Sequence record: NC_042056.1
Length of the DNA stretch: 64,000 nucleotides
Reading direction: 5' to 3' (one strand)
Part shown: positions 5,222 through 25,559 of the stretch, in pieces
Layout of the letters: each line of letters opens with the position of its first letter
Numbering within the stretch: position 1 is the first letter of the stretch
The notes under the pieces: model-generated
Seen by the model: only the letters and a program-made list of their open reading frames with translations
Database searches by the model: none
What the model was told of the DNA's origin: nothing
Position numbers and translations under genes: made by a program

Positions 5222-5232
5222 AGGATACGATT

Positions 5233-6249: not shown

Positions 6250-6258
6250 GAGGTTACA

Positions 6259-7143: not shown

Positions 7144-7152
7144 GGAGGGCAC

Positions 7153-8685
7153 ATGGGCTTATACGATCGTGATTCGCTGAGTTTACTGTGTCGGCTCATC
7201 ATGCGCGATAATCCCCAGCTTGCTGTAGCACTTGATCCGACCAAGGTGATGGTGCTCAGCGGACCCTTTACATCCGGTTTAGGTACCAGCGGGCGTAATG
7301 CCCGCATTACCCTGAACGGACGGACTGGTTCAGGGATTGTTGGGAAAAAAGAATTCTTCTACGACCGCATCAACCTCGGTGCCTTATTCAACGGCATTAC
7401 CGTGGTGTTTATGGCGGCAGGCAGTGCCAAAACGTACGCCGATTTGTTACCGGCTCTCAATGAGCAGTATGGCATCACGTTGCAGGCTTCAGACCTCGCC
7501 AACGGTACCACCAAGCTGCCGCAAGCCTACACCCCTACACAGGTGACACTCACCATTGCCAGCACCTCACCGGCCTTTACAGGTAGCCTGACGGTCACCT
7601 GGACCCGAACGCCGGTAGGCACCTTCCCGGACTCGGGACCGGGCAGCAAGGTGATGTTGATTGGGGATATGAATGAAGGGTACTTCGGTTTAGTGTCCGA
7701 AGAGGAGCTGTTCAATGCCCCTGCATTGCATGCGAAGATAAACGAAGGCAATGCCAGCCCTGTCGGTACGGTTAATGCCATCCCAGCCACCCGCCACTGG
7801 TATAAGTTTGCCCGCGACGGCAAGATTGTTTATCTGGCCAGTTACAACCACATTAACATTCTCTGGCGGGATTTGTATACGCGTGGGGCAGTGTACGAAA
7901 CCACCGTACCGCTCAACGATCATAAAGCCCCTGCCAGTTTGACACGCACGGTGCAGAAGTTAGCAATGCGGAAAGTGGAGAGCGGACGGGAATGGTATTT
8001 GTCGCCATGTATGCCACGTCTGTCCGACCAGACCTCTTGGGACTATAGCGCCATTAACCAAACGCCCGACCCAACGGGTGACGTTGCCCGGCTGTTTATG
8101 AAAGTGGCAAATGCGGGAGGCTACGCTACCGGGGAATGGGACGTTCAGTCCATCGACGCCAACGGTTACTGGCAGTCCACGGCTTCTAAGTCTGACCCAG
8201 CAAAAGCCTTCGGCAGCAGCATGGTCGGTTGGAACCAGGGGATGTACGACATGCTCACCTTCACCGGGGGCTGGCGGCCGATGCTGGAACTGATTGATCC
8301 GGCCGTTGTGGGTTTACCATTAGAAAACTTCGTCGGTACCCCAGAGGGGGTTCTGCGTAAACCGTTGGTCACCATTAGTCCAGACACCGGCGATGTCCTG
8401 TTGCTGCTGTCGGACGTCGCGTGGGAAATCCAGGGGGCGTTGAAAAAGCCACAGGTCTCAATGCTACCCTCTCCACTGCTGAATGTCAGAGAGATAACGG
8501 CGCGCGTAGCAGCAGAAACCGATCCGCTTGTGCTGGACTTTGTTACGGCACCTCTCCTGAGTGTACGGCAGACCAGCTGGCAAAACGTATTGCGTGCACC
8601 GCAAGCACAACTTGTTGCGGAATACAAAGCATCGACGGTTGTTAATCTCGCGACTGCGAACGGTGAACTCGACGGCTTTAAATAA
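7153..8685 (+). CDS. Virion structural protein, module 3 L subunit
   Basis: Paralog of 3827; ends NGELDGFK; AGGAGG SD. Confidence 0.7.
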   Translation: MGLYDRDSLSLLCRLIMRDNPQLAVALDPTKVMVLSGPFTSGLGTSGRNARITLNGRTGSGIVGKKEFFYDRINLGALFNGITVVFMAAGSAKTYADLLPALNEQYGITLQASDLANGTTKLPQAYTPTQVTLTIASTSPAFTGSLTVTWTRTPVGTFPDSGPGSKVMLIGDMNEGYFGLVSEEELFNAPALHAKINEGNASPVGTVNAIPATRHWYKFARDGKIVYLASYNHINILWRDLYTRGAVYETTVPLNDHKAPASLTRTVQKLAMRKVESGREWYLSPCMPRLSDQTSWDYSAINQTPDPTGDVARLFMKVANAGGYATGEWDVQSIDANGYWQSTASKSDPAKAFGSSMVGWNQGMYDMLTFTGGWRPMLELIDPAVVGLPLENFVGTPEGVLRKPLVTISPDTGDVLLLLSDVAWEIQGALKKPQVSMLPSPLLNVREITARVAAETDPLVLDFVTAPLLSVRQTSWQNVLRAPQAQLVAEYKASTVVNLATANGELDGFK

Positions 8686-8697
8686 GAGGATTTGTAA

Positions 8698-9693
8698 ATG
8701 GCCTTAAAACTAAAATGGAAGAACCCGAATGTCGGGGCGACCACCATTGACATTTATCGTGGCGATACGATTAACGTCAGTCTCACCACACCACTGGTGA
8801 CATTAACGAACGGCGAGCTGTCGTGGGTAGATACGACGGCATTGTTTGGAAAAACGTATTACTACGTCTGGGCCGTGAATACCGCAAACGACCGCGTAGT
8901 CAGTCGCCCACAGAAAATTGAGGTTAACGACCGTAAAGGCCCTGGACCCAACTTGCTGTTGCATGGTAACGAAGGCTACGGTTTCTTTGGGGTGGTTCCA
9001 GCCGCAGATTTTGTTAACAGCGGCGCTATCTTGGCCGTAGCGAAAAATCTCAGTGGTGTCCCACAAGCCACCGTGTATCCGACTTGGTATAAGTTCATTC
9101 GCAAAGGCAAGGTTCTGTTTGTACCAAACCAAAGCTTTGGCGATACCACTTGGCAAGCACTGTATAACGCGGGCTTTGTTTACGGGGTTAACAATACGGG
9201 ACCGGGCGGTGCGGGAACCGTTAACCAATTAACAACGTTTGAACTGAACGGCGACCTGTTCTTAGTCCGGGCAACAAAAGCGTTTCCTGAGGAAGTGCCG
9301 TGGACGGACGGACTGGGTTCGTACGATCTTGATACCATGCCTGTGATGGCAAATGTGTACGCCGAATACGAAGACCTGCTGTATCCGATGGCCGCACACT
9401 CCCCGCTGCGTAAACGGATGGTAACGGTTGGAGATGAAAATCTCAACAGCGTCCTACCGCCCCTGTATAACACCGTCTCTCGTACTGTGATTGGGGTCTG
9501 CTGCCAGGACTACAACAACAACTTAGTGCTCCAGCGCGGGGTTGGCTATAACTCATACGGCCAATCCTCACACAACCGCAACACGCTGCGTGCCTGCAAC
9601 CGTCGTACCAAGACCGATACCTGCGTCTGGTGGCCGGTGGTGGAATACATTGGGCGTGTAGGTGAAGTAGACTTGACAAAATTAGGAGTGTAA
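8698..9693 (+). CDS. Virion structural protein, module 3 B subunit
   Basis: MALKLKWKNPN, paralog of 1879 and 5233. Confidence 0.7.
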   Translation: MALKLKWKNPNVGATTIDIYRGDTINVSLTTPLVTLTNGELSWVDTTALFGKTYYYVWAVNTANDRVVSRPQKIEVNDRKGPGPNLLLHGNEGYGFFGVVPAADFVNSGAILAVAKNLSGVPQATVYPTWYKFIRKGKVLFVPNQSFGDTTWQALYNAGFVYGVNNTGPGGAGTVNQLTTFELNGDLFLVRATKAFPEEVPWTDGLGSYDLDTMPVMANVYAEYEDLLYPMAAHSPLRKRMVTVGDENLNSVLPPLYNTVSRTVIGVCCQDYNNNLVLQRGVGYNSYGQSSHNRNTLRACNRRTKTDTCVWWPVVEYIGRVGEVDLTKLGV

Positions 9694-9696
9694 GGG

Positions 9697-10599
9697 ATGG
9701 GAATCACGATTAACTGGGATGACCAGACCGACCAAGCGTTAGATGCCATCGAGGTGTATCGTTCAACATCACCGATTGACATTAACAATCCTGGTACCCC
9801 GATTGCGACACTGGCAGGAACCGCCCGCTCGTACGAAGATACTGCGGTGAAAGTGGGGAACACGTATTACTACTGTGTGGCGGTAAAGAAGGGAGGGAAC
9901 CGTTCTTTCGGTGCGGTGCAGACCCAAGGCTATTATGCTAACTTAGGTCCTGGACCACAGCGGTTGTTACGCGGAGATTGGGTACGCGGCTACTTCGGTG
10001 AAATGTCTCCAGCTGACTGGGTGACCCCGGCGGATGTGGCTAACAAAATCAAGGATGCGCTCAAGTCCACCACGGGGATCACTTTCACAACCAGCACCGG
10101 CTCTATCTGGTTCAAGTTTATCTATAAAGGGAAGATTCTCTTTATTCCGAACCTGAACCTGTTGAACAGCAGCAACTGGACAACCGGCTACAATGCTGGG
10201 TTTATTTTCGGCACTGACGATTTTGGAAACTCACCAACGGGTGTCCCCGGTGCCGTTAACCAACGTTGTGTGATTGAAATCGCTGGGCTTCAGTACATCG
10301 CTCGTGCGATTCGTCTGTCAGAAAAACCGACTACCCAATACCTGACCGACCAGCTGGACTTTAATGACAGCGAATGGAAGTCTACCTATGCACGACTGCG
10401 GGCCGACGGGTTAGCCATTACCGACCCAACAGTACAACCGCGAGTGAATGACTTGAGCAGTCTTAACAGCACAGGCAGCGCGCATATGGCCGACGCTAAC
10501 AACAGCGCCGCGGTTATTAGCAGCGCTCCTGAAACCTTGGGCAAAACCCCGAAAACTTCGGGTATTGGCTGGATGGTTGTACTCGAACTGTTGCAATAA
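9697..10599 (+). CDS. Virion structural protein, module 3 C subunit
   Basis: MGITINWDDQ, paralog of 2884 and 6259. Confidence 0.7.
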   Translation: MGITINWDDQTDQALDAIEVYRSTSPIDINNPGTPIATLAGTARSYEDTAVKVGNTYYYCVAVKKGGNRSFGAVQTQGYYANLGPGPQRLLRGDWVRGYFGEMSPADWVTPADVANKIKDALKSTTGITFTTSTGSIWFKFIYKGKILFIPNLNLLNSSNWTTGYNAGFIFGTDDFGNSPTGVPGAVNQRCVIEIAGLQYIARAIRLSEKPTTQYLTDQLDFNDSEWKSTYARLRADGLAITDPTVQPRVNDLSSLNSTGSAHMADANNSAAVISSAPETLGKTPKTSGIGWMVVLELLQ

Positions 10600-12396: not shown

Positions 12397-13107
12397 TCAG
12401 GCGTTTAACAGTGGAATCTGCGTAATCGGTTGACTTAACGGCTGCGGTTCCCAAGTGACCGTTACAGCGTTAAATGCACGCTTGATATTCTGGTAACGTA
12501 CATTGACACACACCGAATGCTTCACATCCCAACGTTCATGCTCAGGAATCGCGTTTTCAATCTGTTCACGGAAGAACAGATAGTTGCGATTATAGTTCAG
12601 CGTGACATCCGAGATTGACGGGTAGCTGTACTGATGCGGGTTATCGTTCTTATCGGCATACGACGGCCAGCCGAAGTTCTTCACCGCTTCGTAAAACGAG
12701 TTGGCGAGGAATAGTTCGACCTTCATCATTTCCATAATCCGCAAGAACATCAAATCCGCAAACGGCTTGTCCGTTGCCCGTGACAGATTGCCCGACGGAG
12801 TATCCGGGTAGGGTGCTGGGGACGGGGCTTTCTGATACAGCAGGTCGTGGATACAGGCAGCTGCCGCCCAAGGGCCATCAGGGTGCAGAATCGGCTGTAA
12901 GGCAGCTGGGATACTCGCCAAGTCCGTGACGAAGCCCGCGGGGGCGGTGACATACATCAGCGTGTCAGGATGAATACCAGAACGGTACACCATGTCATCC
13001 AAGCCCGGATGATCACGGTACAATGCCCTCAGCGTAAACGGTACCCGGAAGTCGTCTGTCAGAATGAACCACTGCTTATCTAACACTTTATACTTCAACT
13101 CGTTCAT
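12397..13107 (-). CDS. DUF1353-like protein
   Basis: APAGFVTDLASIP..W.AAACIHDLLY..AD..F pattern typical of DUF1353. Confidence 0.7.
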   Translation of the reverse strand: MNELKYKVLDKQWFILTDDFRVPFTLRALYRDHPGLDDMVYRSGIHPDTLMYVTAPAGFVTDLASIPAALQPILHPDGPWAAAACIHDLLYQKAPSPAPYPDTPSGNLSRATDKPFADLMFLRIMEMMKVELFLANSFYEAVKNFGWPSYADKNDNPHQYSYPSISDVTLNYNRNYLFFREQIENAIPEHERWDVKHSVCVNVRYQNIKRAFNAVTVTWEPQPLSQPITQIPLLNA

Positions 13108-13880: not shown

Positions 13881-13920
13881 AGAAAAAAAAGAAAAGCGAC
13901 CCACCCCCGAAGGAGTGGGT
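13881..13920 (-). terminator. Intrinsic terminator closing the radical SAM operon
   Basis: Minus strand ACCCACTCC-TTCG-GGGGTGGGT followed by a long T-run. Confidence 0.8.
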
Positions 13921-13925
13921 ACGAC

Positions 13926-14582
13926 TTAGGCTACACCGTTATCCGCAGCAAGCTGCTTAACTGCGGTGAAGTCTTTTTGTTCCGTGAGGATACGGATGCG
14001 TTGTTTCAACACAGACATGACCATGTGCAGGTCATTGTCACGCGTGATGATTTCCGCATAGAGGGCTTTAACGTCCTCCACCGTCCACGGCTCGATAGGC
14101 TCGTTGTTCAGCGTCATCCAGTACATCGGGTCAACCCCGGACTGCATGTAGCTTTGCATCGATTCGCGCGACTTCTCGTCAGCTTGGAACGTCTTGTCAC
14201 GGAAGGTAATGGGTGCAAACCGTTCCGCGTTATACTTGTCGTTCAGTTTCGGATAAATCGCATTGACTTCCTGATAGAGGTAGTTCTCCGTCGAGGTCAG
14301 CGCGGTACGTACGTGGTCTAAATCAATCTCCAGCACGTCAGCAATAAACTCTTTGGTTTTCTTCATCAGGAATTCAATTTCAACCGGTGACAGGTCAAAG
14401 CCTTTGAGTTTCTCGCGGGCTTTCTTGTCACTCATACCGTTAATCAGATGGTAGTGCAGTAGCAGGCAGAACCCGATACGGTTTTCCATCTGGTCTTGGT
14501 ATTCTTCCACGTAGTTACCGTAGCGGTCGATACGCGTGCCCCGTTCGAAATAACGGGCTTTTATTTCGTCGTTACTAAGCAT
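13926..14582 (-). CDS. Protein with C-terminal DUF4376-like (tail fibre-associated) domain
   Basis: ITFRDKTFQADEKSRESM..WMTLNNE..V.ALY..K.RI pattern in the C-terminal half. Confidence 0.55.
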   Translation of the reverse strand: MLSNDEIKARYFERGTRIDRYGNYVEEYQDQMENRIGFCLLLHYHLINGMSDKKAREKLKGFDLSPVEIEFLMKKTKEFIADVLEIDLDHVRTALTSTENYLYQEVNAIYPKLNDKYNAERFAPITFRDKTFQADEKSRESMQSYMQSGVDPMYWMTLNNEPIEPWTVEDVKALYAEIITRDNDLHMVMSVLKQRIRILTEQKDFTAVKQLAADNGVA

Positions 14583-15118
14583 CCGGATTCTCCTGCAATC
14601 CCAAGGTCAACCAGCAGACCGAAGTCAATGAACTGGAAATCATTTTCCAACTCTTCGCCCCAGAGCAGTTTGGCCTCTTCTGCTTCATCACCCATCTCTT
14701 CCAGCGTCTTACGTGCCACTTCGAATTCGTGGTAGAACGCATCGGTCAGGTGTGTACCGCGTAATGCACGCACAGTCACACCAGGGAAGTTCAGGGCCAG
14801 TCCCACAACGTTGGTTGGGTCTGCATCACCGGTAGAACGGCGCAGTACCTGCAACTTGTGTTTTGGGAACGCCACCACACGTTTTTCGAAACCGGGATTA
14901 CGTTTCTCGATTTCGACAACGGACTGGTGATCGTCTTCCACGCCCTGTAAAGGCAGGATGACATTCAGGCCATAACGGTTCAACAGACGAATGGTGTCAT
15001 CGTTGAAATCTTCACCCGGCACGATCGCATGGATGTTGTACAGCTTGTGTTTGCGAATGAACGCATCGACAAGGTGAACGTTACGCCGAGTAAAATTGTG
15101 AATCAGCAATGACTTCAT
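14561..15118 (-). CDS. Hypothetical protein in the radical SAM operon
   Basis: 185-aa ORF overlapping both neighbours, with GGAG SD. Confidence 0.6.
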   Translation of the reverse strand: MKSLLIHNFTRRNVHLVDAFIRKHKLYNIHAIVPGEDFNDDTIRLLNRYGLNVILPLQGVEDDHQSVVEIEKRNPGFEKRVVAFPKHKLQVLRRSTGDADPTNVVGLALNFPGVTVRALRGTHLTDAFYHEFEVARKTLEEMGDEAEEAKLLWGEELENDFQFIDFGLLVDLGIAGESGCLVTTK

Positions 15119-16427
15119 TCGAGGCTCCGAGTTCTAATTTAAGTTTATCTGCTTTCATGCGGTCACGCACGCAGCTCGCACAGTAGCACATGGATTTATC
15201 GTGCAGGTCGGCGACATTCGTGGTACCGGTTTTCTGATACCAGTATTCGGACACCAACAATTTCGCGGTCGTCCAACCACACTGGCGTCGCTCAGCATGG
15301 TACTCTTTACGCGCTTCCAGCTCGCCGTCACCGTTCTCGTAAGAAGCAGCCGCACAGCTACCGCACGAGTGTTTCATCGGGCAGCCTAAGCAGGTAGACG
15401 GGTAGTTGGTGTACTGCGTCTGAATTTCGTTCAGTAGTTTGTGACCGTCAATGTTCACAATCTCACGCCCACGCAGTTCTGCTACCGCTGAACGGGTGGT
15501 TACGGTTGACATGAAGCGGTTACAGCCGTAAATCTTACGGTCGAAGCCAAGACAGGTCATGTGGGTCAGCGTACCGCAGTAAGGACGTACACGGTCTGGG
15601 TGCAGACGGGTTGCTTCATCGTCCAGCAACTTCTGACGCCAGTCCGGGTCCCATGTCGCCATGAAGTCCAGCCCATCAGGAATGATGTGGGTCAGGATGT
15701 TACGTGGTGACTTGTGGTAGCCGTTGTCGACCCAGTAATCGATAACGTCAATCATCTGGTTTGCGATACCCAGAGCCATATCACGCGACAGAATGTCTTC
15801 GTACGTGACGTTACCGGAGATGGTACCACCGCCCGTTTCTTTAATCAGGTGAATCATGCTCTCGCCGTAACGAGGCAGGGTCTCACCGGTAAAGGTGGCT
15901 TTGATACCGAGTTCTGCAATACCGACAGATTTCAGGTATTGGTAGCCGCGCATCGCCTGCTCGTACGAGCCTTCACGCGAAGTGGTGAAGATACGATAGC
16001 GGTCGTGTACTTCTGGCAGACCATCGATGGACACACCAATCGACAGACGGTCTTTCCAGCGTTCAATGATTTCTTTGCTGATAGGACGGTCGAACAAGGT
16101 GCCGTTGGTAGAAATAGAGAATACGTACTGGCGGTTGTCGCGCGCCGCTAACTCTTCGGCTGTCTCAAAGACGGCTTTCAGAATCTTCGGCTGCATAAAC
16201 GGCTCACCCCCGATGATGTCGATAATGATTTCGGCATCTTCGATGTGACGGTCGCGGTCAAAACACGCATGAATAAAATCGACAGCGTCATCCACTTTGT
16301 TGTTGCGCGGATACTTACGTTCGTAGCAATACGAACAGTCGAGATTACAAGACAGGTTAGTTACGACCTGATACGTGAGTGTGGGGCGCTGTTTACGCGT
16401 CTGCGATGAAGATCGTTCTTCACTCAT
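15081..16427 (-). CDS. Radical SAM/SPASM peptide maturase (CXXX-repeat target type)
   Basis: CNLDCSYC (CX3CX2C), GGEP, STNG, SIDG..HDRYR; SPASM-type Cys set YCG..C..GCNRF / CLGC..CGSC..C. Confidence 0.9.
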   Translation of the reverse strand: MSEERSSSQTRKQRPTLTYQVVTNLSCNLDCSYCYERKYPRNNKVDDAVDFIHACFDRDRHIEDAEIIIDIIGGEPFMQPKILKAVFETAEELAARDNRQYVFSISTNGTLFDRPISKEIIERWKDRLSIGVSIDGLPEVHDRYRIFTTSREGSYEQAMRGYQYLKSVGIAELGIKATFTGETLPRYGESMIHLIKETGGGTISGNVTYEDILSRDMALGIANQMIDVIDYWVDNGYHKSPRNILTHIIPDGLDFMATWDPDWRQKLLDDEATRLHPDRVRPYCGTLTHMTCLGFDRKIYGCNRFMSTVTTRSAVAELRGREIVNIDGHKLLNEIQTQYTNYPSTCLGCPMKHSCGSCAAASYENGDGELEARKEYHAERRQCGWTTAKLLVSEYWYQKTGTTNVADLHDKSMCYCASCVRDRMKADKLKLELGASNEVIADSQFYSA

Positions 16428-17317
16428 TTGATTACCTCATTGCGATGTTTGCGAGCGTGGATCGTGCGATTGATGTAACGGTAGGCTTCTTGCCCAATGA
16501 CTTTCGCCAGCATGTTACAACCGCTATCGATTTCCATCTCGACATCCATCGTGTAGCCGATAGACGCATCGGAGTCCAGACGAACCAGACCGCTGCACGC
16601 GTTGCACGACTGCTCAAAGAACTTGCTGATGGAGAACCCAGTTGAGCCATTGTTCATGACATTCAGGCGTTCAATCTGGTCTTCCATTTTGTTGTAGCCG
16701 AACATGAAGTTCATCACCAAATCTTGGTTCAGAGGTTTCTTCATGCGGTTGTCCAACAGCAGCGTCATGTCTTTGAAGCCGTAGTGGTGGAGTGCGCGGT
16801 GTAAGTCCAGCAGGTCAGTGTGCCAATATTTATCAGCCAACTGCTCACGAGTCACCACGGCCCACGTATGGACGTTGTTCAGCGCAGCCATCACTTCGAA
16901 GGCTTCGAATGCACCATCTTCAACGACACGCCAGAGCGGACGTTCGCTCTTTTTGTATCCATCGAACGACACACAGATACGGTTAAACTGTTGCAGCATC
17001 GGGAGATGTTCCAGACGCATTTTCAGACCGTTCGTGTACAGCTCGTGAGTGAGATGCGGGTATCGGGCTTTGACTTCGGCCAGCAATGGCTCAATCTTGC
17101 GGGTTGCCATTAACGGCTCACCACCCGTCCAGTTCATCCCTTGTAAAGTCGGGTACTTCTCCAGTTGTTCAAACAGCGCTTCACGCTGAATTTCCCGACC
17201 AACATCTTTTGTGTCCATGTAATACGCTCCGCCGCAGAAACTACAATCCAAATTACACTTGGACGTCGTCACTATCGACAGCTCGGTAGGGGGACGTATT
17301 TGTGGTGCATCGGTCAT
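16424..17317 (-). CDS. Second radical SAM protein (short, possible Twitch-like C-terminus)
   Basis: CNLDCSFC, TGGEPL, YTNG, SFDG; C-terminal CNAC..GC. Confidence 0.85.
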   Translation of the reverse strand: MTDAPQIRPPTELSIVTTSKCNLDCSFCGGAYYMDTKDVGREIQREALFEQLEKYPTLQGMNWTGGEPLMATRKIEPLLAEVKARYPHLTHELYTNGLKMRLEHLPMLQQFNRICVSFDGYKKSERPLWRVVEDGAFEAFEVMAALNNVHTWAVVTREQLADKYWHTDLLDLHRALHHYGFKDMTLLLDNRMKKPLNQDLVMNFMFGYNKMEDQIERLNVMNNGSTGFSISKFFEQSCNACSGLVRLDSDASIGYTMDVEMEIDSGCNMLAKVIGQEAYRYINRTIHARKHRNEVIK

Positions 17318-17335: not shown

Positions 17336-18214
17336 TTAATAGATCGCGAAAAGGGGGTCGTCCTCAAACTTCGCGCCCACATCCAGAAGGAAATCGGAGT
17401 GGTAGGCATCGAGTATTTGATTCAGAACAGCCTGACGGTCGTTAATCCGTTTAAGATCATCGAGTGTCACGCTTCGCGACTTGATGTTTGAAACTGCCTT
17501 TTCTTCGTCAGCTGTTAAGGAAACCTTCGACAGAAGGAAACTTACCAGCTTGCTCAGGTCAGCCTCGGTACCCGGTGCTTCACCGTAACGCAATTGAACC
17601 AAGAACTGCATCCACGGTTTGCGGATACGGCGACTGATTTCATGTGGATCGGTAATCGCTTCGAACTGCCCATCTACCGCATTCCAGCGAAACTTGTAGC
17701 TATACGCCAGTAAGTCAGCCAGACAATGGATACCGAGCGTTTCATAACCTAAGATGTGATGGTATTTTTCCACACCTTTATATTCTTCCGTGCCGGTCGG
17801 TACTACGGTGTACCAGAACGGATTAGAAGACGGGTAGTCCCAGCTCCACTCGCGACGAACCATGGGAATGACGTCCAAATCCGCAAACGGCGTGAAGATC
17901 ATTTCCAAATCCATCGAGTGGTTCAGGACTGCATCAGTAAAGAAATACTTACCGTCAATCAGTCGGCCACTGGCGTTCAGCTCGCCTTCATTAAACTTCA
18001 CATGCTGAACAGTGTGCTTACCGATGGAGTAGGTATTCTCTTCGGTGTACTGCTTACGTGTAATATCCCGCCCACGTACCTTAGGCCATTCGCCTGGCAG
18101 CATCGAGATAAGGCGTACTTCGTCAGCGATGTGTGCTTTCACACTGTCGTACGACGAAATGTGTAACGGGAAATTTTGCGTCGTGCGGTACGCCAAATGG
18201 AGGTCGTTCTTCAT
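17336..18214 (-). CDS. Hypothetical protein between precursor peptides and radical SAM genes
   Basis: 292-aa ORF with AAGGA SD, co-oriented in the operon. Confidence 0.65.
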   Translation of the reverse strand: MKNDLHLAYRTTQNFPLHISSYDSVKAHIADEVRLISMLPGEWPKVRGRDITRKQYTEENTYSIGKHTVQHVKFNEGELNASGRLIDGKYFFTDAVLNHSMDLEMIFTPFADLDVIPMVRREWSWDYPSSNPFWYTVVPTGTEEYKGVEKYHHILGYETLGIHCLADLLAYSYKFRWNAVDGQFEAITDPHEISRRIRKPWMQFLVQLRYGEAPGTEADLSKLVSFLLSKVSLTADEEKAVSNIKSRSVTLDDLKRINDRQAVLNQILDAYHSDFLLDVGAKFEDDPLFAIY

Positions 18215-18232: not shown

Positions 18233-18442
18233 TTATCGGTTACCCGCGCCGTAACTGCACCCACCACTGCACGACCAGCTACAGCTACCGTTGCAGTTAT
18301 AATGCGAGAGTGGAAGCCCAGCAAGGTTGTTGGTCGAACTGACCGTGCCGCGTGTGGCGATATAGTTATTGGCCTGTGCGGTCGTGATGTAGCCTTCGAC
18401 GTTCTGCACCCGATCGCGAATGTTTTTCAATGAGATTGCCAT
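18233..18442 (-). CDS. CXXX-repeat peptide 1 (short, 4 Cys)
   Basis: Leader MAISLKNIRDRVQNVE; core CNGSCSWSCSGGCS; GAGGA SD. Confidence 0.8.
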   Translation of the reverse strand: MAISLKNIRDRVQNVEGYITTAQANNYIATRGTVSSTNNLAGLPLSHYNCNGSCSWSCSGGCSYGAGNR

Positions 18443-18463: not shown

Positions 18464-18856
18464 CTATCGACTGCCTGAACAGCCAGAGCATCCCGTACAA
18501 CTTGAACTACAGGAACCGGAACAGTTACCGGAGCATGTACCCGAACAACCGGAGCACCCACCCGAACACGAACCAGAACATCCTGAGCACCCACTGGTAC
18601 ACCCAGCAGTACAGCTCGACGAACATGAGGAACCGCAGCCCCCTGATGCCGAACCGGAACAGCCACCTGAACAGCTAGAGCAACCCCAGCTACAGGTTCC
18701 GCCGCAATCGTAATGAATACGTCCTTGGCCGCCGAATAAGTCGACGTTATTGGTTGCCTTATTACGGATGTAGGTTTGTACCCCACCTTCCGTTTTTAAG
18801 GAGTTCGCTTCGATCACAGCAATGCGATCCGCGATGTTTCGTAAGTTGATAGCCAT
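18464..18856 (-). CDS. CXXX-repeat peptide 2 (20 Cys)
   Basis: Leader MAINLRNIADRI; Cys/Ser/Gly CXXX/CXX core; GGGAG SD. Confidence 0.85.
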   Translation of the reverse strand: MAINLRNIADRIAVIEANSLKTEGGVQTYIRNKATNNVDLFGGQGRIHYDCGGTCSWGCSSCSGGCSGSASGGCGSSCSSSCTAGCTSGCSGCSGSCSGGCSGCSGTCSGNCSGSCSSSCTGCSGCSGSR

Positions 18857-18865
18857 TGTTTCTCC

Positions 18866-19255
18866 CTACTGTGGACCAGAGCAACCAGAGCAACCGGTGC
18901 AGCTGGAAGAACACGACCCGGCGCAACCACCGCCACACTTACCACTGCACGAAGACGCACAGGTACCTGAGCAACCTGAACAACCCGAACACCCACCGCC
19001 GCAGTTAGAAGAACAGCTACCCACGCACGTAGAAGTACAGGTTCCTGCGCAGCTGGTACAGCTTGCAGAACACCCGTTAGAACACGACCAGCTACAACTG
19101 CCGCCACAATCCAGACGGGAGGGAGACCACCCACTGAACGAGTCCGCAGCGTTGTAAGCTTTCGATGCAACCTGCCCGTCTACACGAGCCCCGGTAGCAT
19201 AGTTTGCTTCCACATTGTTAACGCGGTCGCGTATGTTTTTCATTGAAATCGCCAT
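18866..19255 (-). CDS. CXXX-repeat peptide 3 (21 Cys)
   Basis: Leader MAISMKNIRDRVNNVE; CXXX/CXX core; AAGGA SD. Confidence 0.85.
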   Translation of the reverse strand: MAISMKNIRDRVNNVEANYATGARVDGQVASKAYNAADSFSGWSPSRLDCGGSCSWSCSNGCSASCTSCAGTCTSTCVGSCSSNCGGGCSGCSGCSGTCASSCSGKCGGGCAGSCSSSCTGCSGCSGPQ

Positions 19256-19271: not shown

Positions 19272-19310
19272 TAAAAAAATGAGGACGCTGCCATAATGAC
19301 AGCACCTCAT
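19272..19310 (-). terminator. Imperfect terminator/attenuator between the tail gene and the peptide operon
   Basis: Minus strand ATGAGG-T-GCTGTC-ATTAT-GGCAGC-GT-CCTCAT followed by a T-run. Confidence 0.55.
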
Positions 19311-19320
19311 GTAATAAGTG

Positions 19321-20526
19321 TTATCGTGAACCCGCTTCGGCTTGTACGTCGTCGCGAGAAGTCAGGCTGCTGTTGACGTGTACTGCCGCCTGAACCACAC
19401 CGCCGTACTGCTTGTGGAGATAGTTCGGGTGTGGGTTATCTGCGTTAACGTGGTTCTGGAGATTCTGCGACAGGGTGTTAATGGAGTTCTGCAATCCAGC
19501 AACTTGCTGTTTCAGTGCATTCAGCTGACCAGAGAGATCCTGAATCTGCTGCTGCGTATCGGAACCGGCGGATTCCAAATCACTGATGCGCTGCTTGAGC
19601 CCATTGATGACTTGGTTCTGGTCATTGATCATCTTCTGGAGTTGTAACACCAGAGAGTTCAGGTCGGCCTGTTGTAACGCCGCCTTTTGGTAGTTCAATG
19701 CCACCGAATTCAGTTGGTCATTCCACGAACCGAGTGCACTGACCACCGCATCGATACGCGCACCGAGTGCTGTGTCCGCTGCTTTCAAATTACCGATGTC
19801 AGCGAGGACAGCGTTAATGGCAGTCTGAACCGTTTGAATCAGCGCGCGAATTTCGGTTTCAGTGAGACCGTTCGCCTGATGAATATCCAGTGCGTGAACA
19901 TTACCTTTGGCATCGATGTGCGATTGTAGCGCCGCCATCATCTGGGTTTGCATGTCAGACATGGCTGCCAGAATCTGCTGGAGCTGAACTTCGTTACCGG
20001 AGTTAATCGCATCGGTCATCAACGCGAGTTGCGTAATGATGTATTCGAAACCAAACAGGTCGCCGAGGTCTTTAAAGGCCGGAGCCGCTGCAAAGGTATC
20101 CGGGACATTACGCAGGTCAGCGAAGTCAACTTTGCGGTCTTCAAGGTTGGCATCAGCCAACGCCTGTTTAATCGCAGAGATAACCGCCGACTGTGGGCCA
20201 CCGACAACCTGTGCAAGACAGACGATATCGGTTGGGATAGCCGGGTTAGTGACGACCACACCCATACAGATTTCGCGGTTCTTAGCAAGCTTCATGTACG
20301 CCGGATGGATGTAAATCAGCTCGTAGTCGGTACCGCGTTTATAAATGGTGTTGGGTTGATTGGCAGGCCGCATACGGAACGTATCCGCAAAGAACGGCCC
20401 TGCTGGGAAAGCGAACGCACGGTTGACCTTCCCCCCACCTAACACAACCGGGACATTGACCGCGTTACTGGACGCAGCCCCTGTCAGGTCAAGTGGGTAT
20501 TGAAATAGAATATCTGGCATGGCCAA
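19321..20526 (-). CDS. Virion/tail-fibre-like protein with long coiled coil
   Basis: N-domain YPLD..GPFF..GTDYEL shared with the three upstream paralogs; heptad-rich middle; NPHPNYL fibre-like end. Confidence 0.7.
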   Translation of the reverse strand: MAMPDILFQYPLDLTGAASSNAVNVPVVLGGGKVNRAFAFPAGPFFADTFRMRPANQPNTIYKRGTDYELIYIHPAYMKLAKNREICMGVVVTNPAIPTDIVCLAQVVGGPQSAVISAIKQALADANLEDRKVDFADLRNVPDTFAAAPAFKDLGDLFGFEYIITQLALMTDAINSGNEVQLQQILAAMSDMQTQMMAALQSHIDAKGNVHALDIHQANGLTETEIRALIQTVQTAINAVLADIGNLKAADTALGARIDAVVSALGSWNDQLNSVALNYQKAALQQADLNSLVLQLQKMINDQNQVINGLKQRISDLESAGSDTQQQIQDLSGQLNALKQQVAGLQNSINTLSQNLQNHVNADNPHPNYLHKQYGGVVQAAVHVNSSLTSRDDVQAEAGSR

Positions 20527-20567
20527 ACTCCCTTAGTGAGACGTCCTTGTCTCGACGTGTTAGATGG

Positions 20568-23500
20568 TTACGGCAACTTAGGCATAAGATTGACCGTCAG
20601 TTTTGACGGGGTGACCGTTCCGCCGTAATAGTTGACCCCGTTGCCGATGTACAACGCGTTGTCGGCAATAAGCATGGGTATCGGTTGGCGGAAGATGACA
20701 TCTCCATGAACAATCGGGAAATAATCATCGATGGAAACACCTGCTGGCATGGCGACTTTATAAACATCAAGCACACCACCAGTGATACGCCCCGCCGCAC
20801 CCTGTACGTTCGTTATGGCACGAATGGCCACAGTAGCAGCATCGGAGATATAGAACACCGTCGCTGTGCCGTTATCCACGTTGGAGACACTGAACGCAGC
20901 GAACGCGGTGGTCTGACCCCCGTTGATACCATTAAACACGAATGTGTTTTTGACCCCCACCTCGGCAGCAAGTGTGACCTCAGCCAGTGCAGAAGAAAAC
21001 GTTGCAGAAACATCGAGGTTGGCGTTGGTACATCCAATGGTGCCGGAGCCCAAAGAGTAACCACTCTTCAATTTGATTTTCACCGTCGGGGTCGACGGGG
21101 TAATCTCCACAATCATTTTCCACGCAATCGAGATGACAGCCGACATCCCCGGAATACCCACCAAATACGCATTGTCTACATCAGAAGCCTGACCAAAGTT
21201 GGCACCCTTCATCGTGAACTTCTTGTAGTCTTTAGGCAAGGTAGCGACCGGCGCATCCCGCAGCAACTCGATAGGAACCTTGTGGCTTTGAGACGCGAAG
21301 ACCGGGCCAATCTGCGACATATCCAGATACCCATCACCGGTAGCCGCCGGAGCAGAAAGGGGTTGCTTACGCAATAGCCCCAGTCGCGAAAGCCGCGCTT
21401 CACTGTCCACATTCACATCGTGGCTGTAGACCGTGGCGGTATGCTCCGCCAACTGTTTCAACTCGCCCAAGCGTTTCACTTTTGTGAACTCAGACGACAA
21501 GATACGCTGACTGTCGGTGACTACCGTCCCGATAAACAACCGGGTATCCGTATCGGGCATTTTCTGCGTCAAAAGCTGGTATTCCGGTTTGCCGTTCACC
21601 ACCGCCGCGTGCATGTAGAACGTACGGTTTTGGTACGCACCGGGGAACAACGTCTTGAGGTTCTGGTTATACGCATCCAACGTGTAATAGTCGGAACCAA
21701 ACCGTAAGCTCTCAGACTCGGTGATGTACAGCTCCCACCCTTCTGCGGTTTTTACCCCAGCAACGATTGCAACATTCCCCGCAGGGGTGTAGTTTGTCAC
21801 CCCTGCCGCAACAAAGTCGTTCGGTGGTGCGCTTGGGCCTGCGAAATAAGACGGTGAAATCACCTGCCCGTTTGACCGCAGCATTCGCTCCCCAACAAAC
21901 GAAAGGATGGTAGCATAGTTGTAAAACGTGCTGCCGTGCACCCCCGCCTTCGTCGCCGTCAGCTTACCTCCGTTCAAACTGAAAATCAGCTCAAGGTGGT
22001 ACGCCGCGGATGACCCCACGACCTGCCGAATCATGAAGTTCGGCAAGTGCATGATGCCCGTACCGTCACCTTTCTCGTAGAAGATTGGTTGGCCCATTCT
22101 GCTGCTGTGCCCAGAATAGTTGGTATTCTGAATGAGTTGCAGGTTGCTGTACGTCGCGATGTTGGTGTATACAACGTCAGCTGTGGTCGTGACCAGCTGA
22201 ACAACCCCGTTCACGACGCTCGGGTAGATTTGGAACGTAACATTCCCTAACCGCTTATTGCCGTTATAGAGTGCGTAGTACGACATTTGTGCAATCCAAA
22301 TCGGATTGGCATCAAGGGGTCGAATCGCCCACACGGAAAAGAGGAGGTTAATCGGGTTGGCAATGCTGTCCGCCACCTCACCTGCCGGTGCTGCCGCTTT
22401 TAAGGCCGCCGTTATCTTGTTCCATGTGTCGGAGGACAACGTAAGGGTATCGGCTTTTGGTACCGCACCCACGGCCTGGTACCGCTTCACACCGGGACCG
22501 TTCCAATACGCGCCGTTTAACTTACCCGACTGGAGCGTGGATGTCGCACACCACGTCATGTCTGCCAAAGCGTAGTAATCGTCAACCGAGAAATTGCGGC
22601 GCACGTTACTCGGCCCTGCGCCCAAGTACGCGGGACCGTATGTTGTGTTTGGGTCTACCTCGACATACACCGCGCTGTTGGCGTTGGCGGGACTAAACAG
22701 ATACGCATTATTGCCCAGATACACCGGATGGGATTGACCGACAGAATACACCGAGCCAATACCGCCCGTGAACTGCCAGTTCGCCAGAGAGGTGTAACCG
22801 CTTTTGTGGTCTCCTGCGATAAAGTCGTAGAAGTCCGCGTCCATTGTCGAGTGTGCTAACCCGTTGGGGAGGGTGTCCTGAGACTGATCGTAAATAGACC
22901 ATGCACGTTGGCCAACCCCTTGGAACACCCGCATGCGGTTATCAGCATTGCCGTACGGGAACCGAACTTTCCAGCCTGCCTCTTTGAGCTTTGTCCCAGT
23001 GGCAAGATACACATCGTCCGCATCGATTTTGAATGGGAAGATATCTGCATTATCCAGCGAGACCGTCAACGTATCCATGTCAATCTGGAACGAAGTCGCC
23101 CAAGTGAAACGGCCATACGCGTCATCAGGGCTCAACAATAACAGGGTGCTCAAAATACCTACCCTGGTCATGTTCTCGCGCTGCGCTACCGCATACGTCG
23201 CGATGTTGTGTGCGATGTTGCGCAGGTTACCCCAGCGTACTTTACCGGCCTCGGTCACATAGGTGGTGCCCTGTGTCGCAGGGTCGGTCGCATCAGTGTC
23301 TGTGTTAGCGCGCAGCAACACTGAGATACCGTTGACGCTGTTCCCCCCCTTGAGAGCAGCAGGGGTGTAAACCATCTTGTCCCCACTGACTGACCCTACT
23401 AACGCATAGACACTGTACTGGGTATTGGTCAATTCCAGATGAAGAATGTAGACCTTCCCTTTATACACAATGGTTTGTTCGCGTGTCTGATCGCCGAGAT

Positions 23501-25559
23501 AGCCACTGACCGTGCCGTTCGCGTCGAACGAGGCAGGGAATTCACTCCGATACACCTGTTTGTGTTTGGTGTAGTTCAGCGTTCCTTCCAGCATGACTGT
23601 GTAGAAATATCCGTCGCTGCCTAAACAGACAAGTGCCGCATCGCCTGACGCAACCAGTGTGAGTAGCCGGACACCGGGATACTTACTCATTCCCGCTGGG
23701 TGGTATGGGAACGACGTCTGCTGCTCCCCTGCAATTGACCCATTGTTGTTTACACGGGCATAGCCGTAGTAAATGCGATCAGTGTTCGGCAATCCGTCGT
23801 TTGCATTGCGTAACAGGTAAACGATGTCCCCTTCCTGCTTGACTGCCCCCAACCCTTTCCAGCTCAGCTGTTTCGCAAAACCGGCAAAGTTCCCCACCGT
23901 TGGAATAGGCAGGAACCCACTGTTACCGTACGAGGCACCCCCAGTCGTCCACGACGGCAACAGACCGTCCAACACGTCTTTGTACGTATTAAGGCGCTGT
24001 TGTACGTTATAGCCCTGCTTTGACGTCACCACTTTGTTCGTGGTGGTATCAATCGCATCCCACAGTTGCAACAGACCTGCGTCCGTATCAGACGCCGTTG
24101 GTACGCCCGTCAGGTCGGCAAACGTGTGCGTGTGGTTTGCCAGAGCCTTATTTGCCAACACCGCACGAATGGCGTTGGTCAACGGTTTCTCAGCAGGCGC
24201 GGTGTTGTTGATGTTACCCACACCTAAATCGGCGGTCGTTAAGGTAAGGGACTGTTTCGTACCGTCATCAATGAACTTCTTCCCGTTAATGGTGTACGTG
24301 TTGTCCACGTAATCATCCAGCGTCTTTTTCAGGACGTTAACAGCATACTGCGAAATCGCGGTACCCGAAGAAATATTTGCAGACAGGTTGGTGATAGCAA
24401 ACAGCCCCGGCACTTTGTCAGTTGCCGTGGGCAGTTGCGCGTTCATGGTCAGTGGAGAAGACTGCTTCGCTGTACCGAATACCTTGATGGTGTCGGTTGG
24501 AGAAAAGTAAGCGTTCCCCGGTAAGAGTTTTACTTCGGACAGGTACAACGAGACCATGTCCGGTGTGACCAGATATGCACCGTTAAAGATGGGTGCCACT
24601 GCGCCGTTGAGCACATAAGCCGTGTTCAGCCCCGAGCCCAACTCAACCCCCACACCCCGTTCGTTACTGTCTGCATCAGCAGTGATGTTGATAGCACGGG
24701 TGGTGGTAATAAGGAACTTATCGCCTTGCAGGGTGATAACATGGCTCGAGTCGGCGGTACGGAATGTCAACGCACCGTTATTCAGCACCTTGAGGCGACC
24801 ACGCAGTTCACCAAGCACCACAGGCATCAGGGTATCGATGTGAGCTTGCTGAATGCCGTTTGCTTTCATGATAGCGACTAACTCATCCAGCGTTTTACCG
24901 AATGCCTTCGTCGAGTCTACCGCTTTGGTCAGTACCTTTAACGCCCCAATCTCATCCGCAGTGTATTGGTGTGCGTTTTTGATACGATGGTGGCTGTACA
25001 TGTTGTCGTCGAAAATCTTTTTACCGTTGGCAAAAATCAAATCGGTGACCTCGGCGTACGCCACATCCATATCGCCTGCCCGCTTAATCAAACCTTGACG
25101 GATATCATCCAGCGCTTTCACGACTTCATCGCGGAGCAGGGCTTCATCTAAGTTGGCAGGTGGGTCAATTGCAGGAACCACTGGTGCATAACGCATCAGT
25201 TCAGACCAGTCGGTGTTACGCGGGTCTTTGATGTCCTCTTTCACCAAGAACTTGCCAATCTCGGTCTGTGGTACGCGGTATTCGCGACCAATCGAATAGA
25301 TCGTGTAGTCAACAGAGGTGTCTCCGTTAATCAACATAATCCCGCCGTAGATTTGGTCTTTCATTGCGACAGCGGCTTCTTTATAATAGTAGCCGAGGTA
25401 GTAATCCAGACCCTCAATGAGCTTCACGCCTGCGCTGTTTTTCAGCTCAAGCCCGGTACGGAAGAACGGCCCCTCAGGAGGGATGACCACATTGTATTTG
25501 TTCGGATATGTGGTCGTCAGTAGCGTACCGGTAAATTTGGCTACGTTCGTGCTCGCCAT
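20568..25559 (-). CDS. Large tail-fibre-like virion protein (1663 aa)
   Basis: Shared GPFF/DY N-domain, DLGVGNINNT..KP and HTH/AT..G..L fibre motifs, long Gly/Thr/Asn-rich beta-type C-terminus. Confidence 0.7.
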   Translation of the reverse strand: MASTNVAKFTGTLLTTTYPNKYNVVIPPEGPFFRTGLELKNSAGVKLIEGLDYYLGYYYKEAAVAMKDQIYGGIMLINGDTSVDYTIYSIGREYRVPQTEIGKFLVKEDIKDPRNTDWSELMRYAPVVPAIDPPANLDEALLRDEVVKALDDIRQGLIKRAGDMDVAYAEVTDLIFANGKKIFDDNMYSHHRIKNAHQYTADEIGALKVLTKAVDSTKAFGKTLDELVAIMKANGIQQAHIDTLMPVVLGELRGRLKVLNNGALTFRTADSSHVITLQGDKFLITTTRAINITADADSNERGVGVELGSGLNTAYVLNGAVAPIFNGAYLVTPDMVSLYLSEVKLLPGNAYFSPTDTIKVFGTAKQSSPLTMNAQLPTATDKVPGLFAITNLSANISSGTAISQYAVNVLKKTLDDYVDNTYTINGKKFIDDGTKQSLTLTTADLGVGNINNTAPAEKPLTNAIRAVLANKALANHTHTFADLTGVPTASDTDAGLLQLWDAIDTTTNKVVTSKQGYNVQQRLNTYKDVLDGLLPSWTTGGASYGNSGFLPIPTVGNFAGFAKQLSWKGLGAVKQEGDIVYLLRNANDGLPNTDRIYYGYARVNNNGSIAGEQQTSFPYHPAGMSKYPGVRLLTLVASGDAALVCLGSDGYFYTVMLEGTLNYTKHKQVYRSEFPASFDANGTVSGYLGDQTREQTIVYKGKVYILHLELTNTQYSVYALVGSVSGDKMVYTPAALKGGNSVNGISVLLRANTDTDATDPATQGTTYVTEAGKVRWGNLRNIAHNIATYAVAQRENMTRVGILSTLLLLSPDDAYGRFTWATSFQIDMDTLTVSLDNADIFPFKIDADDVYLATGTKLKEAGWKVRFPYGNADNRMRVFQGVGQRAWSIYDQSQDTLPNGLAHSTMDADFYDFIAGDHKSGYTSLANWQFTGGIGSVYSVGQSHPVYLGNNAYLFSPANANSAVYVEVDPNTTYGPAYLGAGPSNVRRNFSVDDYYALADMTWCATSTLQSGKLNGAYWNGPGVKRYQAVGAVPKADTLTLSSDTWNKITAALKAAAPAGEVADSIANPINLLFSVWAIRPLDANPIWIAQMSYYALYNGNKRLGNVTFQIYPSVVNGVVQLVTTTADVVYTNIATYSNLQLIQNTNYSGHSSRMGQPIFYEKGDGTGIMHLPNFMIRQVVGSSAAYHLELIFSLNGGKLTATKAGVHGSTFYNYATILSFVGERMLRSNGQVISPSYFAGPSAPPNDFVAAGVTNYTPAGNVAIVAGVKTAEGWELYITESESLRFGSDYYTLDAYNQNLKTLFPGAYQNRTFYMHAAVVNGKPEYQLLTQKMPDTDTRLFIGTVVTDSQRILSSEFTKVKRLGELKQLAEHTATVYSHDVNVDSEARLSRLGLLRKQPLSAPAATGDGYLDMSQIGPVFASQSHKVPIELLRDAPVATLPKDYKKFTMKGANFGQASDVDNAYLVGIPGMSAVISIAWKMIVEITPSTPTVKIKLKSGYSLGSGTIGCTNANLDVSATFSSALAEVTLAAEVGVKNTFVFNGINGGQTTAFAAFSVSNVDNGTATVFYISDAATVAIRAITNVQGAAGRITGGVLDVYKVAMPAGVSIDDYFPIVHGDVIFRQPIPMLIADNALYIGNGVNYYGGTVTPSKLTVNLMPKLP

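Follow-up and report, generated by a model that had tools for sequence, protein, structure and literature searches.

Radical S-adenosylmethionine (SAM) enzymes with a SPASM domain carry out peptide chemistry that is known from antibiotics, from cofactors and, recently, from an anti-phage effector. In the maturation of freyrasin by PapB and of thermocellin by CteB, SPASM enzymes link the sulfur of a Cys to a carbon in a residue close by, and do so repeatedly along a CX3-type core. The CXXX-repeat system of the curated models TIGR04114, TIGR04115 and PF27846 combines a SPASM radical-SAM enzyme with a target that has Cys-X3 repeats and many small residues; to our knowledge it has been defined only computationally. 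The HXS system contains the repeat protein HxsA, the paired radical-SAM enzymes HxsB and HxsC, and the small protein HxsD (PMC13128918). Both enzymes are needed, for processing and for one site-specific change, and HxsC binds HxsD, not HxsB (PMC13128918). Here we analyzed two adjacent radical-SAM genes, gp172 and gp173, in a window of 64,000 nucleotides from NC_042056.1, the genome of Erwinia phage Machina (a jumbo myovirus, 241.6 kb). Over the 4.9 kb that we compared, the window and the Machina genome agree at 100% of positions. Coordinates are those of the window; adding 124,000 gives the coordinate in NC_042056.

We suggest that gp172 and gp173 are probably the catalytic subunits of a four-part phage module that post-translationally modifies a Cys-repeat domain, in non-redundant steps and by what would be thioether chemistry. 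Judged from sequence, the four parts would be a Cys-repeat domain (CXXX or CXX spacing, rich in Ser, Gly and Thr), an accessory protein of the gp174 family, a short enzyme with a three-Cys tail (gp173), and a long SPASM enzyme (gp172). That the Cys-repeat domain is the substrate is strongly indicated; thioether chemistry and a division of labor between the enzymes are suggested more faintly. The pair most likely modifies part of the virion, and not an antibiotic peptide.

An earlier note, made from the letters of the window, had placed two different radical-SAM enzymes side by side at 15081-17317 and proposed a two-step tailoring of nearby Cys-rich cores. The two open reading frames (ORFs) are indeed RefSeq gp172 (448 aa; 15081..16427, minus strand) and gp173 (297 aa; 16424..17317, minus strand), each annotated there just as "radical SAM domain-containing protein." The ORFs, Pfam, maps of the Cys residues and fold models all identify gp172 as the long and gp173 as the short enzyme. 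The genes overlap by the four letters ATGA (16424..16427, minus strand), as the note had read. The junction is ...AAATGAGTG..., in which the TGA stop of gp173 shares letters with the ATG of gp172. The ATG of gp173 is preceded by GGAG, approximately 9 nt upstream.

We found that gp172 has a complete SPASM-type set of Cys residues. Its Cys are at positions 27, 31, 34, 55, 284, 292, 302, 346, 349, 355, 358, 383, 414, 416 and 419. The SAM cluster is C27/C31/C34 (CNLDCSYC) and a GGE motif lies at 73-75. The match to Radical_SAM (PF04055) scored 56.5 bits (Pfam gathering cut-off 29.5), which places gp172 in the superfamily. Eight Cys (284/292/302/346/349/355/358/383) make up the SPASM-type set, and its central motif at 346-358 reads CX2CX5CX2C, a one-residue variant of CX2CX5CX3C. 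When gp172 was aligned with 20 relatives that go as low as 31% identity, no change was seen in the SAM cluster, GGE, C284, C302, C346, C349, C355, C358 or C383, and C292 was conserved in at least 90% of the 21 sequences. The additional C-terminal CYCASC (C414-x-C416-xx-C419) reported in the note is also present. Conservation of this CxCxxC tail is limited to the jumbo-phage clade, and the prophage enzymes lack it; it might bind metal or serve in docking. A CxCxxCxC string resembling it closes the extended short enzyme (P0162, 390 aa) of the metagenomic phage contig L104.

The top NCBIfam match of gp172 was TIGR04115, the CXXX-repeat-target maturase (126.6 bits; cut-off 350). PapB, the ranthipeptide maturase (NF047865), came next (125 bits; cut-off 340), and other maturases of peptides that are ribosomally synthesized and then modified post-translationally (RiPPs) ranked after it. 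The Campylobacter ortholog of gp172 scored 143.7 bits to TIGR04115, also below the cut-off of 350, in an alignment that spans the whole model. The score of gp172 to HxsB (TIGR03978) was 82 bits (cut-off 370). The thioether synthase CteB was the best relative of gp172 in the PDB (phmmer 1.9e-12; Foldseek 3.2e-15; the mean predicted local distance difference test score, pLDDT, of the gp172 model was 85.6).

gp173 also has a SAM cluster of the form CNLDCSxC, and a much reduced C-terminal part. Its Cys are at positions 21, 25, 28, 115, 238, 241 and 267, with the SAM cluster C21/C25/C28 reading CNLDCSFC and GGEP at 65-68. The score to PF04055 was 44.8 bits against the same cut-off of 29.5, and gp173 is thus a member of the superfamily as well. 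The seven- or eight-Cys SPASM motif is absent from gp173: after the SAM core there are only C238 and C241 (CNAC, 238-241) and C267 (GC, 266-267), the arrangement that the note had described. Among 16 relatives, down to 22% identity, C21, C25, C28, G65-G66-E67-P68, C238, C241, S242, G266 and C267 were invariant, and C115 was not conserved. On these Cys patterns the tail is best described as a reduced, twitch-like SPASM that would have room for no more than one auxiliary site. SkfB and other twitch enzymes likewise have a shortened Cys domain at the C-terminus in place of a full SPASM, and SkfB was among the matches of gp173 (sequence E 0.008; fold Z 14.5; Foldseek 4.3e-9). In contrast to SkfB, gp173 fits full SPASM enzymes better (Z 19 versus 14.5), has no RiPP recognition element (RRE), and has a Cys pattern, C-x(1-2)-C ... 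G-C, that is specific to its own family.

CteB was the top solved match for gp173, as it was for gp172. The gp173 model (mean pLDDT 88.2) aligned over residues 4-297 with CteB (VIA-align Z 19.1), ChlB (18.8), TigE (18.3) and anSME (17.7). These maturases spanned Z 17.6-19.1 over the full length of the protein; viperin and MoaA were at Z of about 15 and, with PqqE, made up a tier approximately 4 Z units lower. These sequence and model comparisons support the placement of both gp172 and gp173 closer to the peptide-modifying SPASM and twitch maturases than to non-peptide radical-SAM enzymes. The note had named membership of a non-peptide family as a result that would count against its proposal, and neither enzyme clusters with such families.

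The two enzymes are different proteins, as the note had proposed. BLASTP between gp172 and gp173 gave 28% identity over 76 residues, and profile-profile alignment of the two families (hhalign) covered the SAM core alone (residues 5-204 versus 5-218). Both proteins match phrog_1802, and we considered that they might be recent paralogs; the short BLASTP match and the restriction of the profile alignment to the SAM core rule this out. Both enzymes also look active rather than dead, as far as motifs can tell. The catalytic CX3CX2C, GGE and the enzyme's own C-terminal Cys set were present in 23/23 distinct short and 20/20 distinct long sequences from all of the loci that we fetched.

We found three proteins in which the two enzymes are fused. 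A profile search of 1.84 billion representatives gave 26 clusters with E up to 1e-30, and approximately 40 of the best 150 clusters were full-length short-type proteins, most of them with the C-x(1-2)-C ... G-C tail. P0141, P0206 and P0247 each have an N-terminal half of the short type joined to a complete C-terminal half of the long type. Most of the other multi-radical-SAM fusions in this search were generic weak matches (~50 bits to both profiles) and were rejected; just these three were genuine. In P0206, a 668-aa metagenomic fusion, the short half retains CX3CX2C and has no Cys in its tail, so the three-Cys auxiliary site may be dispensable once the two enzymes are covalently joined.

The loss of this tail in P0206 could also indicate that one of the enzymes has no catalytic role and serves the other, or the fiber, as scaffold or chaperone. 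A related notion is that the substrate of the pair is not a peptide but, for example, a nucleotide or a cofactor, and gp173 does have weak matches to viperin, MoaA, QueE and NrdG-type families and fits viperin and MoaA at the Z of about 15 given above. We consider both notions highly improbable. No sequence that we examined, fusions included, has lost CX3CX2C or GGE, and the peptide maturases stand approximately 4 Z units above the nucleotide enzymes with coverage of the whole protein. A non-peptide substrate is also hard to square with the strict linkage of the pair to Cys-repeat ORFs in unrelated phage types, described below.

Three Cys-repeat proteins, all candidate substrates, are encoded upstream of the enzymes on the same (minus) strand, as indicated by the ORFs and PHROGs. 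These are gp175 (69 aa; 18233..18442; phrog_6085), gp176 (130 aa; 18464..18856) and gp177 (129 aa; 18866..19255). gp175 is the simplest of them, with 4 Cys and every interval CXXX. gp177 has 21 Cys, with 15 CXXX and 5 CXX intervals. Together the three proteins mix CXXX and CXX spacing and contain a CSW motif, in agreement with the note. In each, approximately 50 aa at the N-terminus are conserved, and the Cys-rich C-terminal part is hypervariable. Asp and Asn are very rare in the repeat cores, which are nearly all C, S, G and T. The TIGR04114 repeat model gave 11.5 bits with gp176 and 14.3 bits with the fiber of a Deferribacter prophage (both below the cut-off of 20), and CXXX repeats plainly adjoin the enzymes.

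The remaining component, gp174 (292 aa; 17336..18214, minus strand; phrog_8030), lies between the Cys-repeat genes and gp173. It is an orphan accessory protein: it had no assignment in Pfam (even at E up to 10), NCBIfam or Atlas, and the Atlas model (pLDDT 0.34) had no usable neighbors. A hidden Markov model (HMM) built solely from 17 jumbo-phage orthologs of gp174 recovered positional equivalents in other phages: L104 (3e-38), L003 (3.7e-14), L108 (8.5e-14), L107 (6e-9) and, more weakly, L106 (7.5e-6), L004 (1.4e-5) and L109 (2e-4). The match in L105 was marginal. The HMM found nothing in L083, where a 239-aa ORF at the position of gp174 is not detectably related to it. Because the HMM recovers positional equivalents across lineages, we regard gp174 as the third conserved component of the module.

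The module is conserved in phages of very different types. Homologs of gp172 and gp173 are adjacent in all SPN3US-like jumbo phages, approximately 64 cultured records from phages of Erwinia, Salmonella, Escherichia, Cronobacter and Proteus, and the pair is therefore not a chance pattern. Between jumbo-phage genera the long enzyme is 59-80% and the short enzyme 40-61% identical to that of Machina. Through distant relatives of gp172 (31-39% identity) we reached unrelated phage types, and the module is now known from the SPN3US-like jumbo phages, from P2-like and siphovirus-like prophages, and from metagenomic phages. In every lineage examined, a Cys-repeat sequence adjoined one or more short and one or more long enzymes, and nearly all of these lineages also had a gp174-like protein beside them. 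At every locus examined, the module was among baseplate and fiber genes.

The Cys repeat is usually part of a tail fiber, at its C-terminus. It is the C-terminus of a 302-aa fiber-like protein in the Deferribacter prophage L003, next to GpJ, with a short and a long enzyme, and of a 384-aa Phage_tail_fib protein in the P2-like Campylobacter prophage L004/L005, with a long and a short enzyme. In the 213-kb phage L083 it is the C-terminus of a 600-aa fiber and is accompanied by a long enzyme and by a short enzyme fused to an extra domain (473 aa in total, with approximately 220 aa in the extra C-terminal domain). L105 has it at the C-terminus of a 410-aa protein next to GpJ, with one short and two long-like enzymes. 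In L106, in a P2-like baseplate context, the repeat is at the C-terminus of a 240-aa ORF beside a short and a long enzyme. In all five (L003, L004, L083, L105 and L106) the repeat thus forms the C-terminus of a fiber-like protein next to baseplate or GpJ genes. PF27846 had weak or faint precomputed matches on fiber-like proteins of L105 and of the contig that encodes the fusion P0141, where the fusion follows a 570-aa protein with the faint Cxxx-repeat Pfam match and a 221-aa protein.

In the remaining lineages the repeat is free-standing or lies near the end of a smaller ORF. L104 encodes free-standing repeat proteins with two short and two long enzymes. L107, a contig from a metagenome-assembled genome with tail genes adjacent, encodes a free-standing 76-aa repeat peptide with a short and a long enzyme. 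L107 had at one point appeared to contain a lone long enzyme; the short enzyme, an intact ORF at 5105-6001, had been overlooked by the gene caller. In L108, next to GpJ, the repeat is near the C-terminus of a 258-aa ORF, with a short and a long enzyme and a second radical-SAM ORF that has a weak, partial match to the short family. L109, a metagenomic phage contig, has it at the end of a 112-aa ORF (measured stop to stop), with a long and a short enzyme.

The order of the genes differs between lineages (short-long, long-short and short-gp174-long), which argues that the pair has been retained by selection and not just by inherited synteny. Since short enzyme, long enzyme and Cys-repeat fiber tips travel together, the pair appears to work as a unit on a structural protein. 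Some lineages have additional copies of the short enzyme. The jumbo-phage contigs L058 and L059 contain two short copies and one long (5422-6343 and 7935-8873), and the extra short copy sits between the Cys-repeat genes. In L083, two successive ORF fragments just after the 600-aa fiber (7986-8701) match N-terminal and later parts of the short enzyme; they look like a frameshifted second short copy or a sequencing error.

Could gp175-177 instead be precursors of a classical RiPP cluster, with leader and core parts that are tailored, cleaved and released during infection as antimicrobial or signaling peptides? Their conserved N-terminal and hypervariable Cys-rich C-terminal parts have the layout expected of such precursors, SPASM-type enzymes adjoin them, and the nearest curated families are RiPP maturases. 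We think that this is very unlikely. We found no leader peptidase or other protease, no exporter or transporter, and no immunity gene from gp170 to gp178 with Pfam, NCBIfam and PHROGs. Elsewhere the same repeat is the C-terminus of tail-fiber proteins of 240-600 aa, always among baseplate and fiber genes, and the residues directly before the repeat are common to the free-standing and the fiber-fused forms. By sequence, the substrates look like tail-fiber tips or free-standing fiber-tip modules, and not like secreted RiPP antibiotics.

Our results also bear on how the two enzymes might share the work. The note had suggested a split by CXX versus CXXX spacing, or one enzyme devoted to Trp, with epimerization as a further choice. 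A split by spacing does not hold as a general rule: all of the intervals in L083 (27/27) and L105 (10/10) are CXXX, and both loci still have both types of enzyme. A Trp step does not hold as a general rule either. No Trp occurs in the cores shown for L004, L105, L107 and L109, where both enzymes are present; a CSW start is common. The short enzyme might carry out an epimerization or another second chemistry. What stands of the two-step proposal is an obligate, non-redundant partnership on Cys cores, indicated by the constant pairing and by the fusions. Joint, non-redundant action on these cores is well supported by the distinctness of the two families, their intact motifs, their likeness to maturases, their pairing beside Cys repeats, and the fusions.

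Compared with the described systems, the Machina locus is a variant on a known theme. It resembles the TIGR04114/TIGR04115/PF27846 system in having a SPASM radical-SAM enzyme and a candidate target with Cys-X3 repeats and many small residues. In contrast to that system, the phage module always includes a short radical-SAM enzyme as its second one, and nearly every lineage also has a protein of the gp174 family; the short enzyme and gp174 match no curated model, and the phage targets are tail-fiber tips. The module also differs from PapB and CteB. It has two enzymes, not one, and its substrates are proteins of 69-600 aa that are tied to virion assembly. Its Ser/Gly/Thr cores have no acceptor pattern of the CX3[D/N] type, with Asp or Asn, as for PapB. 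Unlike CteB, neither gp172 nor gp173 has an N-terminal, PqqD-like RRE, because both start at the SAM core and align from CteB residues 104 (gp172) and 88 (gp173).

In architecture the module is like HXS, with a long SPASM-type enzyme, a second adjacent radical-SAM enzyme, a small accessory protein and a repeat substrate. By this analogy, HXS would be the nearest precedent for a radical-SAM pair with a small partner acting on a repeat protein. The likeness does not extend to family membership. gp173 scored 32.9 bits to HxsC (TIGR03977; cut-off 267.9) and the short enzymes as a group scored 33-49 bits, with HxsC the top match for the Deferribacter ortholog. No likeness of gp174 to HxsD was found in NCBIfam or in the other gp174 searches that we ran. 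The HXS substrate has His-Xaa-Ser repeats whereas the phage module has Cys repeats, and HXS is a bacterial anti-phage defense with a periplasmic effector whereas the phage module is tied to a tail fiber. gp172 and gp173 fall outside the cut-off of every curated family, and so the module is a variant of radical-SAM maturation of Cys repeats and not a member of a named family.

We propose the following mechanism. The Cys-repeat domain would be a C-terminal tail-fiber tip in most phages, and in Machina and the other SPN3US-like phages it would have been split off as gp175-177. gp174, or the conserved segment before the repeat, would present the substrate. Each enzyme would reductively cleave SAM at its own CX3CX2C cluster, and the 5'-deoxyadenosyl radical would take a hydrogen from a residue of the core. 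A thioether of the sactionine or ranthionine type would then be closed by a Cys thiolate that is probably bound at an auxiliary Fe-S site. In CteB, a three-Cys auxiliary site leaves one iron free to hold the substrate thiolate; by analogy, the three-Cys site of gp173 may do the same. Repetition along the core would give a ladder of small thioether rings, and the product would be a densely cross-linked fiber tip that resists protease and reduction. The steps of the two enzymes would be non-redundant, for example with different acceptor positions, with links within versus between chains, or with a distinct second chemistry. The enzymes themselves would not be components of the virion.

A more specific version of this mechanism is possible, and we offer it tentatively. 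In several phage morphotypes, a two-enzyme radical-SAM machine and an adaptor of the gp174 type might staple the Cys-X2-3 repeats of the fiber tip with a thioether ladder, and the links made by the long and the short enzyme might be chemically or topologically distinct, for example within versus between the chains of a trimer.

The distinct second chemistry could also be of another kind altogether, with the long enzyme making thioethers and the short enzyme carrying out a different radical reaction on the same domain. This could be an L-to-D epimerization, an oxidation at C-alpha or C-beta (such as the anSME-like conversion of Cys to formylglycine), or one cross-link, made at a specific site close to the conserved beginning of the repeat. 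Several observations are consistent with such a division. The C-terminal domains of the two enzymes are completely different, and the short enzyme evolves faster (compare the identities between genera given above). Their copy numbers are independent, with two short and one long in L058 and L059 and one short and two long-like in L105. In addition, anSME is among the fits of the gp173 model (Z 17.7), as is, with a lower score, the epimerase EpeE (Z 12.2), and in HXS both radical-SAM enzymes are needed for processing and one site-specific change (PMC13128918). We nonetheless judge this division to be unlikely. The best structural matches of gp173 are maturases that form thioethers or cross-links, not epimerases; thioether synthases such as CteB hold the substrate thiolate at an auxiliary site that has three Cys and one free position; and a step specific for Trp could not be general, since Trp is missing from several cores.

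Several points weigh against thioether maturation of the Cys repeats by gp172 and gp173. All scores are far below the cut-offs of the curated peptide maturases, and so the chemistry cannot be transferred by family membership. gp173 matches named families only weakly and without a clear pattern (AF0577, PapB, twitch, viperin and HxsC); it scored 40.6 bits to PapB (cut-off 340) and had no TIGR04115 match listed. Loss of the three-Cys tail in P0206 indicates that not every short enzyme needs its auxiliary site. Metal binding is another possible role of the Cys repeat, on which the enzymes would then act in some other way. Finally, Cys-repeat proteins have never been detected in virions, and the virion list of phage SPN3US is uninformative on this point since the ORFs are unannotated.

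We found that the Cys-repeat genes of SPN3US had been called in the wrong frame. Three unannotated Cys-repeat ORFs of 130, 134 and 68 aa lie at NC_027402 ~143,190-144,220 (L002 6130-7159; individually 6130-6522, 6533-6937 and 6953-7159), and RefSeq calls in their stead a 111-aa ORF in another frame (ACQ60_gp100). Because of this annotation, the Cys-repeat proteins were probably missed by the published virion proteomics. Mass spectrometry of SPN3US virions detected 86 proteins, including gp160 and gp167-171 and none of gp161-166 (PMC5694885). We mapped these genes onto Machina by sizes and gene order, with SPN3US gp168 (5.2 kb, 188 kDa), gp167 (44.8 kDa) and gp160 (18.5 kDa) as anchors. On this mapping, SPN3US gp163 and gp164 would be the two enzymes, gp165 the homolog of gp174, and gp167 and gp168, both detected in virions (PMC5694885), the homologs of gp178 and gp179. 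The absence of these two presumed enzymes from the virion list fits non-structural maturation enzymes.

In Machina the module lies within the tail-fiber block. Directly upstream, on the same strand (19321..25559), are gp178, a virion structural protein of approximately 400 aa, and gp179, a 1663-aa tail-fiber candidate. Downstream of the module there are endolysin and tail assembly chaperone genes; the chaperone is gp167 (12397-13107; phrog_1158), near the module. The genes gp177-gp176-gp175-gp174-gp173-gp172-gp171-gp170 overlap or abut and are all on the minus strand. gp171 (185 aa; 14561..15118; phrog_7988, ORF and PHROGs) overlaps the 3' end of gp172 and is also kept in SPN3US. gp170 (218 aa; 13926..14582; Pfam and PHROGs), the last gene of the string, encodes a tail-fiber-associated protein with DUF4376, and DUF4376 genes flank the module in L105 and L109 as well. 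A consensus scan, the sole basis for both, gave two terminator-like hairpins on the minus strand. One, with a 10-bp stem and a T-run, is between gp178 and gp177 (19284..19306); the other, with a 9-bp stem (6 GC pairs) and a T-run, is directly past the gp170 stop (13899..13920). They are likely the upstream and the downstream boundary, respectively, and their location exactly at both ends of the eight-gene string suggests that it is a separate transcription unit.

Two other neighbors were seen at individual loci. In L109, two genes for S-AdoMet lyase (PF23780; 1269-3537) are approximately 3 kb upstream of the radical-SAM pair, an odd combination of SAM destruction and SAM use. In the Campylobacter prophage L004, a DUF1353 protein is encoded directly after the short enzyme (10068-10433).

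The genes themselves had been annotated before. Relative to the literature that we searched, which lacks most subscription journals and is therefore weak evidence, the function, the pairing and the link to fiber tips are new, and a comparative review of jumbo phages does not mention radical SAM (PMC7824862). The finding has exposed an annotation error in SPN3US. It also raises the general question of why some repeat substrates need two radical-SAM enzymes, for which HXS is the sole pair that has begun to be studied. The module is tractable, with gp175 and its four Cys as the smallest candidate substrate, and SPN3US has a genetic system of amber mutants (PMC5694885). These phages are candidates for biocontrol of Erwinia and Salmonella, a use in which the stability of the fiber matters. 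If our proposal is correct, radical-SAM/SPASM chemistry would enter virion assembly, at the fiber tip that contacts the host. A thioether-stapled fiber tip would be the first radical cross-linking of a virion protein that is installed by enzymes, and the module would be a RiPP-like pathway that yields a structural organelle for receptor binding and not a secreted peptide.

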